64,000 nucleotides of DNA from Guillardia theta CCMP2712. Its lineage: Eukaryota > Protista > Cryptophyta. Shown one piece after another: positions 58,785 to 61,136 of this stretch (within the stretch, counting starts at the first letter, position 1; each line of letters begins with the position of its first letter). The notes beneath the pieces are model-generated. The model saw only the letters and a list, made by a program, of their open reading frames with translations, did not search any database and had not been told where the DNA came from. A program made the translations under genes and the position numbers. The stretch lies in assembly GCF_000315625.1 (NCBI RefSeq), contig NW_005434605.1, forward strand, positions 238,407-302,406. The letters run 5' to 3'.

Positions 58785-61136
58785 ATGGGCGGTTGCGTCT
58801 CAGCAGAGGGGAGGGAGGTGATGGTGGAGGCGAGCATGAGCGAGATGGCAGGAGAAGGAGGCACGAAACAATATAGTCATGCAGGAGGAGGAGGAGGAGG
58901 AGGAGGAGGAGGAGGAGGAGGAGGAGGAGGAGGAGGAGGAGGAGGAGGAGGAGGAGGAGGAGGAGGAGGAGGAGGAGGAGGAGGAGGAGGTAGTGCTTAT
59001 GGTTGGGGAAGTGGTACAGCAGACAGTGGCGGAGTTGTTGTTGGTGACCGAGGAGAAGGTGGTGGTGATAGGAGAGGAGTTCAGTATGTTTCAAGTCCTG
59101 GCCGCGAGAGGACTCTTCCCCGAGGAGAAGATTACTGGCTCCGCAGCCACCCGAAAACGAGCAAGGAGGACGCGCCCAAGGTCTCCCTGGCTCAGTGTCT
59201 GAGCGCTCAAGAGGCCAAGGAGGCCAAGGACTCGTTGATACAGAGAGAGTTGGATGCTAGGGCGGTGCCGTATTCGCCACCCATCGACGACTCCTTGATC
59301 AGTAGCTGGGACTTTGACGAGTCGGGGCGTGTGGAGAAGGCAAGGGATCACTTCATCGTGGTTGTTGGGTGTGACAGCGCTGCCCGGAGAGTCTTCGTTG
59401 AGTTCGTGCCGTTCACAGCCGTCGACTCGAGCGTCTACGGGTGGAGCTACAGGTGGGCCACCCCCATCAACTGCTCCGACCTTGTCACTATCGAGGTGGT
59501 CGACTGCGACAGCGGGGTGTTGCTGTACAGGACGAGAGTCTTCAAGATGGAGCTGAACATGCTGGGCTCTGACGTGAAGAAGTACGGGAAGATGTGGATC
59601 GACAAGGTGTGCGTACCGCAGAAATCCAAGTACACAGGGTTCCAAGTCAGCGCCATGGGCGCTCTCTACGAGAAGGCGACCACGGTGCTGCGGGAGGTAA
59701 GGAATCCCAACGGGCTGCCTTACTTCGACTATCTATCCCGAGCATGGACGTACCAGGAGGCAAGGTATGGCAGGACAATTTGCGATCACGAGCCTCCGCT
59801 GTACTTGGCAAAGGAATGGGCGGAGATGCTGTGGGGGCGCCAATTCGTCGTGAGCATATCCGGTCTGCTGTATCAGATCCCGAACCTCATGGCGAGGACG
59901 ATGGACGAGAAAGTCGGCCCGAACAACATCACGTACACGGCGATGCGGAACTGCATCGGGTCAGGCTGGTTCTTCAGGTTCTTCGTAAAGAACTTCCATC
60001 GGCACGAGGGGTTCACCCCAGAGATGGCCAGCAACAAGAACTTCAAGTACCTCGAGGAGATGGCAAACTCCATGGGAGACGAACTTGACGAGAAGCTCTC
60101 GACGGCATTTCAGAACCTGTCATACGAGGCTGTGGACAACAAGGGGCAGCCCTCGCCCTCGCTCATTGGCCCCTTCGACTGCAGAACGCATCCTGAGCTG
60201 ACCGGAGTGCTGTGGCAGGCGCTCGTGAAGCTCAGGAGCAGGTACGTCTTGGACGTCGACGAGTCCTGCCTGCCGGAGGTTTTGGCTGAGATGTCTCTGC
60301 GGAGGGCAACGTATGAGTCGGATCGGTTCATCGGCACGTTCGCTGTGCTCTTGAAGAAGATGGAGCTAGATCTTGCCCGACAGGAGAACGGTTTTCCTGA
60401 CCTACAAGAGACCTGGCGTCGTCTGACCAGCAGCTATCAGCAAGGGTTGATGCAGCAGCCGAACCTTGCTTTCATGCTCTATGGTCCGGCAGACGTGGCC
60501 GGCATGTCGCCCGTGCATCTTCGACTGCCTTCAGGGATCCTGGGGACAGGACAGAGCTACAAGGTGACGCCGTTGGAGTGCGAGCGAGTGGTCACGGGCA
60601 TCGGTCTCGGGGACACTGACGAGCAAACGACTCGCCCGGACTTGAGGAACGCGTGGGCTGTGCATGTGTCCGATCAAGGCGCCGTCTCCCTCCTGATCAG
60701 AGCCGATGTCACCTCAGTGGATAGTCCATACCGCAGGATAGCAGTGGTGGGCAAGGACCTGGCCGCTTCTCACCGCTCCCTTGCCACGAGCTTCTGTGGC
60801 CTCCTCCACCTTGGGGGCCAGCAGCTGCTGCAGATGGAGCAGATTGCCAAGGACCTGAAGCAGGAGAACCGCCGGGTGGCCGACGGCATAGGAGCGATTG
60901 CAGGAATCTTCCGAGACTACGTCCTTGCGTTGGGGAGCGGGCAGGCAGCAGGGAGGGATGGGGTGTACATGAAGCAGTTCAAGAGCATCCACTCGATCCC
61001 TCCGGATGCCTCGGAGCAGGAGATGACGGCTCTCCGCGAGCTTGTTTACATGCACAACAAGATGAGCAAGGTCAAGGCTGAGAGATCCTGGACTCGCTTC
61101 GAGACCCTAAGTGTCATGGTTGAGGTACCCAGTTGA
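58785..61136 (+). CDS. Heterokaryon-incompatibility (HET, PF06985-like) domain protein with N-terminal MGGC acylation motif and poly-Gly linker
   Basis: Uninterrupted ORF with HET motifs in the expected order: YGWSYRWA, MWIDKVCVPQ, QVSAMGALYEKATTVL, YLSRAWTYQE and downstream RRATYESDRF. Confidence 0.8.
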   Translation: MGGCVSAEGREVMVEASMSEMAGEGGTKQYSHAGGGGGGGGGGGGGGGGGGGGGGGGGGGGGGGGGGGGSAYGWGSGTADSGGVVVGDRGEGGGDRRGVQYVSSPGRERTLPRGEDYWLRSHPKTSKEDAPKVSLAQCLSAQEAKEAKDSLIQRELDARAVPYSPPIDDSLISSWDFDESGRVEKARDHFIVVVGCDSAARRVFVEFVPFTAVDSSVYGWSYRWATPINCSDLVTIEVVDCDSGVLLYRTRVFKMELNMLGSDVKKYGKMWIDKVCVPQKSKYTGFQVSAMGALYEKATTVLREVRNPNGLPYFDYLSRAWTYQEARYGRTICDHEPPLYLAKEWAEMLWGRQFVVSISGLLYQIPNLMARTMDEKVGPNNITYTAMRNCIGSGWFFRFFVKNFHRHEGFTPEMASNKNFKYLEEMANSMGDELDEKLSTAFQNLSYEAVDNKGQPSPSLIGPFDCRTHPELTGVLWQALVKLRSRYVLDVDESCLPEVLAEMSLRRATYESDRFIGTFAVLLKKMELDLARQENGFPDLQETWRRLTSSYQQGLMQQPNLAFMLYGPADVAGMSPVHLRLPSGILGTGQSYKVTPLECERVVTGIGLGDTDEQTTRPDLRNAWAVHVSDQGAVSLLIRADVTSVDSPYRRIAVVGKDLAASHRSLATSFCGLLHLGGQQLLQMEQIAKDLKQENRRVADGIGAIAGIFRDYVLALGSGQAAGRDGVYMKQFKSIHSIPPDASEQEMTALRELVYMHNKMSKVKAERSWTRFETLSVMVEVPS
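58884..58990 (+). repeat. (GGA)n microsatellite encoding poly-Gly
   Basis: About 35 GGA units in frame in the HET ORF. Confidence 0.95.

Follow-up and report, generated by a model that had tools for sequence, protein, structure and literature searches.

Positions 58785 to 61136 on the plus strand of a 64-kb window of the Guillardia theta CCMP2712 genome (the window is the whole stretch of DNA analysed, 64,000 nucleotides of contig NW_005434605.1, and all coordinates refer to it) hold a real, intron-free gene for a protein with a heterokaryon incompatibility (HET) domain, a TIR-like domain. The full account, a single-exon, single-copy cryptophyte HET protein that is probably lipid-tethered to a membrane, was assigned a probability of about 0.6. 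The HET label of this gene is already public in UniProt/NCBI and is not new here: an exact-cluster look-up led to GUITHDRAFT_113715 (EKX40236.1, XP_005827216.1, UniProt L1IVF3), which carries the automatic UniProt name 'Heterokaryon incompatibility domain-containing protein'. New are a recurrent N-terminal acylation motif, the loss of this motif in the public gene model, and a module of about 390 residues common with other protist HET proteins.

The gene and its HET domain

In the open reading frame (ORF) listing of the 64-kb window, the frame is open from 58587 to 61136 on the plus strand; the ATG at 58785 gives 783 codons, and the stop codon occupies 61134-61136. From residue 92 on, the translation is 100% identical to the public-model protein (P0030). 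A preliminary description of the stretch, made from its letters, had reported an uninterrupted frame of about 780 residues with an ordered HET signature. Both observations held: on translation, MGGCVS, WSYRW, WIDKVCVPQ, SRAWTYQE and the downstream block were found where they had been placed, and QVSAMGALYEKA was likewise present. The occurrence of ordered family motifs in an ORF of such length is far beyond chance. The coding sequence and its features beyond the spacer are listed first.

58785..61136 (+): complete coding sequence, unspliced, one exon, 783 codons plus stop (ORF list; gap-free collinear homology to the relatives P0001-P0004 across the conserved body)
59139..59354 (+): conserved region ahead of the HET domain, residues 119-190, helical in the model (conserved in the family alignment; predicted local distance difference test, pLDDT, high from about residue 134)
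59355..60512 (+): extended HET module, residues 191-576 (Pfam HET; hhalign; AlphaFold 2 pLDDT high at 134-549; HET matches in the Atlas)
59442..59456 (+): HET block 1, WSYRW, strand beta-A (W224 invariant, S221 and R223 near-invariant in 23 sequences; a strand in the model)
59595..59621 (+): HET block 2, WIDKVCVPQ, strand beta-B and the next loop (W271, D273 and Q279 invariant)
59736..59759 (+): HET block 3, SRAWTYQE, helix alpha-C (R319, W321, Q324 and E325 invariant; helix 136-143 of the core model)
59757..59759 (+): E325, candidate catalytic glutamate (invariant; in the helix after beta-C of the model)
60300..60338 (+): downstream conserved block RRATYESDRFIGT (aligned with KDRLYGVWGV of oomycete-type HET proteins; invariant within the family)
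60513..61133 (+): family-specific C-terminal region, residues 577-783 (matched by close family members only among 1.84 billion representatives; AlphaFold 2 pLDDT <50)

The Pfam HET profile (PF06985) matched the window protein with 30.1 bits (E 7e-07) over profile positions 29-84 of 146 only, against a curated gathering cut-off of 22.5 bits; in the genome scan, profile positions 5-83 were covered. The relatives all exceeded the same cut-off, with 25-46 bits. The three HET blocks follow each other in the family order, with the patterns S/Y-R-W, W-x-D-x-x-C-I/V-x-Q and R-x-W-x-x-Q-E, and across 23 diverse protist sequences the residues W224, W271, D273, Q279, M291, Y316, R319, W321, Q324 and E325 were invariant. 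A scan of the protein with the NCBIfam library gave no match, and a sub-threshold match to DUF7065 (E ~0.08) was dismissed. By profile score, conserved blocks and the fold match to HET models described below, the HET membership proposed in the preliminary description was confirmed; the gene product truly belongs to the HET (TIR-like) family, although it is divergent.

Conservation extends well beyond the Pfam match. A stretch of about 460 residues (119-576) is conserved and contains the extended HET module of about 390 residues, which is composed of a TIR-like alpha/beta core (~210-350), a helical extension and the SDRFIGT block. Profile-profile alignment with hhalign to an oomycete-type HET group, including Aphanomyces and marine sequences, gave a probability of 99.3% (E 2e-20) over residues 192-576, the SDRFIGT block included. 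Because this homology spans so much of the protein, most of what had been taken for an unrecognised C-terminal half belongs to the extended module common with oomycete-type HET proteins; the description stands for residues ~577-783, to which the family-specific part is limited. The tail showed 15 differences in 621 nt to its close relative L007. Look-alikes of the tail proposed by a language model came from fungi and carry the HET-associated DUF8212 or a Het-6 barrel; their scores make them leads only.

In the AlphaFold model of the core (residues 185-370, mean pLDDT 82), beta and alpha elements alternate, and an additional hairpin is inserted between beta-A and alpha-A. Compared with ESM Atlas clusters of which 92-100% of the members are PF06985 proteins, mostly from ascomycetes, template modelling (TM) scores of 0.56-0.67 by query were obtained over 139-170 of 186 residues, with predictions on both sides; the best fungal HET cluster models reached 0.65-0.67 over 162-170 of these residues. 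The full-length model aligned to fungal HET proteins over ~290-400 residues. The Guillardia protein thus resembles the fungal HET proteins (Podospora HET-E/HET-D/BH, Neurospora TOL, PIN-C and HET-6) in its three ordered blocks, a Pfam score above the cut-off and a predicted fold with a TM of ~0.67, and also in having a long region after the core, whose tail is faintly like the DUF8212/Het-6 barrel. Unlike them, it lacks a NACHT/NB-ARC, WD40, ankyrin or lectin partner and has an acylation motif with a spacer.

A remote similarity of HET to TIR domains has been detected with HHpred (Dyrka et al. 2014, PMC4986451), and the conserved HET glutamate is stated to correspond to a functionally important glutamate of TIR domains (PMC9153377). 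VIA-align, an aligner independent of Foldseek, was run with the core against the PDB and gave, in the top 50, 17 TIR, 3 SEFIR and 9 nucleoside deoxyribosyltransferase-type chains, the remainder being largely SLOG/LOG and Sir2 proteins. The TIR chains included SpbK, Hydra TRR-2, SARM1, TIR-STING, MyD88, MAL, RPS4, RPP1 and ThsB. The best Z-score was 5.6, with 5.3 for the SpbK TIR, 5.0 for the Hydra TIR and 4.7 for the SARM1 TIR; all are <8, the caution level of the tool, and such values cannot prove homology. Foldseek found no match in the PDB, neither for the core nor for the whole model. A core profile built from 23 sequences retrieved no PDB chain at E <= 10 and hence no sequence link to solved TIRs, and no Pfam TIR family matched the window protein at E <= 1. 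Matches of phmmer in the PDB were artefacts of the poly-Gly linker only, and VIA-align of the whole model was uninformative, its sole match being a low-confidence helical hairpin. For the TIR-relatedness stated in the preliminary description, the VIA-align neighbours of the predicted fold are coherently TIR-like and the Foldseek check was empty; the structural neighbours lend weak support to the published HET-TIR relationship. As in TIR domains (SARM1, plant TNL TIRs, bacterial ThsB/SpbK) and nucleoside 2-deoxyribosyltransferases, the core is predicted to have a beta-alpha arrangement, with a conserved glutamate on the modelled helix alpha-C; it differs from TIR domains in the extra beta-hairpin between beta-A and alpha-A, in Z-scores of only 3-5.6 and in the missing Pfam TIR match.

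Copy number, selection and function

The best homologue is a transcript-derived protein of Hanusia phi with 82% identity. A search of the own genome showed the family to be single-copy in Guillardia: the paralogue check revealed one copy of this family and one different HET gene, on contig C16. Compared with L007, a metagenomic relative with 96.8% identity, the ratio of non-synonymous to synonymous substitution rates (dN/dS) was 0.17; the gene is under purifying selection. In L007, a TGG>TGA change at positions 1124-1126 affects the family-invariant W477 (window 60213-60215) and splits the gene call in two. This stop is seen on a single contig; either a naturally occurring null allele or an error of sequencing may explain it.

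The second HET gene (L002, G000:C16:693974-697207, minus strand) has an uninterrupted ORF at 757-3216 encoding 819 residues. About 8 hydrophobic segments lie within the N-terminal ~390 residues of its protein, and a HET domain, which Pfam scores at 25.9 bits, comes after them.

A role in cell death or immunity is suggested by analogy to the fungal proteins, at somewhat less than even odds. In fungi, those HET domains that have been tested trigger cell death (PMC4986451); reviews of 2024-25 state that the mechanism is unknown even there and that a solved structure does not exist for any HET domain. Cleavage of NAD by the HET module, proposed by analogy to TIR domains, would be less probable still. 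The gene might instead encode a conserved cryptophyte housekeeping protein, a membrane-associated enzyme or scaffold with a HET/TIR-like fold that has no part in death or immune responses. We regard this as rather unlikely. It would agree with a single gene copy, the high identity between the two genera and the low dN/dS, as well as with the Pfam scan of the protein, in which known sensor domains, whether of NLR type, repeats or others, were absent, and the mechanism of HET domains is not understood even in fungi. It fits less well with the lethality of the fungal HET domains; the presence of a further membrane-tethered HET/TIR-like gene on C16 suggests a defence-type repertoire, and the nonsense variant in L007, if natural, fits dispensability rather than a housekeeping duty.

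The N-terminus and the disputed intron

The favoured reading of a lipid-tethered protein depends on the first residues. MGGCVSA fits the PROSITE PS00008-type pattern, with an MG start and a small residue at position 6, and carries a cysteine at position 4. The N-terminal features are listed here.

58785..58802 (+): MGGCVS, predicted N-myristoylation (Gly2) and S-palmitoylation (Cys4), ATG context atcATGg (PROSITE-type pattern; MG start conserved)
58803..59138 (+): low-complexity Gly-rich spacer, residues 7-118 (53 Gly in 112 residues; lineage-specific)
58883..58990 (+): perfect (GGA)36 microsatellite coding for 36 Gly, residues 34-69 (TRF, 100% matches)
58792..59058 (+): disputed in-frame 267-nt GT..AG 'intron' of GUITHDRAFT_113715, which removes Cys4-Ser6 and the spacer including (GGA)36 (deduced from the P0030 N-terminus MGGGGDRRG)
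58731..58733 (+): alternative in-frame ATG upstream, tttATGa, in weak context, 18 codons before MGGC (disfavoured)

All four homologues have the MG start and a small residue at position 6; that of Hanusia reads MGGCVA. The myristoylation pattern (MGxxxS/A) was present in 5/5 full-length family members and in 6/19 other protist HET clusters, namely Syssomonas (MGCGYSS), Aphanomyces (MGGGGSI) and four marine or metagenomic clusters. A cysteine beside the motif occurred in Guillardia, Hanusia and Syssomonas only. No hydrophobic segment was found in the window protein; therefore lipidation would be its sole membrane anchor. The poly-Gly spacer of the preliminary description was recovered as 36 successive glycines at residues 34-69. 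The spacer is missing from P0002-P0004, and in Hanusia an acidic repeat stands in its place.

Other proteins place comparable domains on membranes by acylation. Mammalian TRAM/TICAM2 is a myristoylated TIR adaptor. In the Arabidopsis NLR RPS5, both localisation to the plasma membrane and cell death require acylation of Gly2 and Cys4 (PMC3801107). In such proteins an MG(G)C-type motif puts a death or immune domain on the membrane, and a comparable placement is predicted for the Guillardia protein. RPS5 and TRAM/TICAM2 are not related to the Guillardia HET protein, and the analogy concerns localisation alone.

The public model uses the same ATG, splices after codon 2 and thereby removes Cys4-Ser6. 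If 58792-59058 were a true intron, the protein would start with MGGGGDRRG; it would be soluble and not dually acylated, and the linker ahead of its HET domain would be short. We consider this unlikely, even though it is the NCBI/JGI model of P0030: the ends are GT..AG, the length is divisible by 3, and the length of the spliced linker is close to that of the short linkers of P0002-P0004. The splice sites, however, are weak, with the donor G|GTTGCG and a purine-rich acceptor region (33% pyrimidine in the final 30 nt of the 'intron'), and the transcript-derived Hanusia orthologue retains MGGCVA followed by a long low-complexity spacer. For these two reasons the unspliced reading is clearly preferred. 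Moreover, the acylation pattern present in every relative would be lost in the spliced form, and gene predictors often take low-complexity repeats out as introns. The public intron is thus probably a mis-annotation, as judged from the sequences compared. Of the membrane-anchoring start claimed in the preliminary description, a plausible myristoylation and palmitoylation motif that is conserved in relatives was confirmed; the splicing of the public model stands against it.

Translation from the upstream ATG at 58731 would add 18 residues, bury the glycine and preclude myristoylation. The frame is indeed open from 58587 and includes this ATG, but the bases around it are unfavourable (T at -3, A at +4) in comparison to those of the MGGC ATG (A at -3, G at +4), and the region upstream is AT-/CT-rich, resembling a promoter or untranslated region. 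Every relative begins with MG, as does the public model, and in the marine relative L003 a TAG in the same frame precedes the MG by 4 codons; initiation at 58731 is therefore very unlikely. The favoured start is 58785.

Origin of the gene and its place among HET proteins

A search of 1.84 billion representatives with the family profile retrieved 25 proteins at E <= 0.001. Full-length or C-terminal matches among them were confined to close relatives; the rest matched the HET core only. All relatives with a named source were protists: Syssomonas (Holozoa), Aphanomyces (an oomycete), Pterocystis (a centrohelid), Rhodelphis and one MMETSP transcript. No fungal protein was among the source-named matches of this search, and the term 'fungal-type' used in the preliminary description was dropped. 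The 56%-identical marine relative L003, located on Tara Oceans genomic contigs, is one uninterrupted ORF with neighbours that show sub-threshold eukaryote-type matches only (BRE-like, WD40). The GC content at third codon positions (GC3) of the HET gene is 0.70, the same as in the host paralogue on C16. Vertical inheritance under constraint is supported by the protist relatives, the intronless marine relative, the host-like GC3, the single copy and the low dN/dS; a protist, non-fungal ancestry is indicated by these comparisons, with which recent transfer or retroposition does not fit. Lateral acquisition or retroposition had been proposed before from the missing introns; a recent arrival by either way, from a fungus or another donor, is highly improbable: HET domains are most abundant in fungi and the gene is intronless in a genome rich in introns, but none of the source-named matches was fungal, vertical conservation is seen in the Hanusia orthologue and in two marine lineages, L003 is likewise intronless among eukaryotic neighbours, GC3 equals that of the host paralogue, and this paralogue is also a single ORF.

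Homologues of HET outside fungi have been described in stramenopiles, haptophytes, choanoflagellates, green algae and bryophytes (Dyrka et al. 2014, PMC4986451). The Guillardia protein shares with these the remote similarity to TIR, and its nearest relatives (Aphanomyces, Syssomonas, Pterocystis and Rhodelphis) are of that kind. In contrast, cryptophytes are absent from the list of that study, and neither the myristoylation motif nor the module of ~390 residues was described there. A literature search for 'HET domain' together with myristoylation, or for Guillardia theta together with heterokaryon incompatibility, found no paper.

The metagenomic protein P0006 (377 aa) begins with ~103 residues of a WD40-like sequence (BING4/UTP7-type, nucleolar), fused to the C-terminal part of a P0002-type HET protein; this chimera most likely arose from faulty gene calling on a short contig. 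In the neighbourhood of the Guillardia gene, two runs of N upstream, 52884-53716 (833 N) and 55867-55994 (128 N), are assembly gaps. They account for an apparent low-GC block at 52-54 kb and for spurious long ORFs in several frames, and the AT-rich block was rejected as a biological feature. Upstream on the minus strand, an ORF at 54859-55473 matches the EF-hand (Pfam EF-hand_1, 35 bits) and probably forms one exon of a gene for a calcium-binding protein. The flanking ORFs were searched for a partner gene; with this one EF-hand exon only, no partner was identified, and a synteny comparison of the window with the marine contig L003 showed none. A purine-rich repeat of GAGGA/GAGATGA-like units lies at 61594-61823, ~460 nt 3' of the stop codon; on the upstream side, 56638-56764 and 57045-57091 are further short repeats.

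Several points weigh against the account of a membrane-tethered HET protein given here. The TIR Z-scores are beneath the caution level of the tool, and both Foldseek and the core profile failed to reach a PDB structure. According to the reviews of 2024-25, no biochemical activity, NAD+ cleavage included, has been reported for any HET domain. The fungal allorecognition HET genes are multi-copy and fast-evolving, whereas the Guillardia gene is single-copy and strongly conserved. The stop at W477 in L007 interrupts the reading frame in a close relative. The spliced N-terminus of the public model fails the myristoylation pattern, and the start at 58785 and the exon structure at the 5' end are predicted from sequence comparison.

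In the mechanism that we propose, a myristoyl group on Gly2 and, probably, a palmitoyl group on Cys4 would hold the protein on the membrane, and a fast-evolving flexible spacer with 36 Gly would link this anchor to the HET module. The module may act, like TIR/HET proteins elsewhere, as a switchable unit that processes nucleotides or NAD, or that signals, via E325. The tail of ~200 residues might regulate the module or sense a stimulus, in a response to stress, in defence or in cell death.

HET is among the most abundant death-associated domains in fungi, and its mechanism and structure are still unknown. A small, single-copy, conserved protist HET protein with a predicted anchor offers a simple, non-redundant model for the biochemistry of HET, such as a possible cleavage of NAD or nucleotides that depends on E325, and for its site of action. 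The public Guillardia gene model probably conceals the acylation motif and is worth a re-examination. The N-myristoylated HET architecture was found in cryptophytes, oomycetes, the holozoan Syssomonas and uncultured marine protists. This recurrence suggests that membrane localisation may be part of the ancestral logic, in analogy to TLR/TRAM TIR signalling in animals and to acylated NLRs in plants. A wider view, doubtful at present, would regard HET/TIR-like proteins tethered by lipid or transmembrane segments as ancient pan-eukaryotic effectors of membrane nucleotide signalling or death, with N-myristoylated HET as their conserved form and the soluble or NLR-fused HETs of fungi as a derived offshoot; Guillardia would then deploy several variants, including this gene and the multi-pass HET protein on C16.

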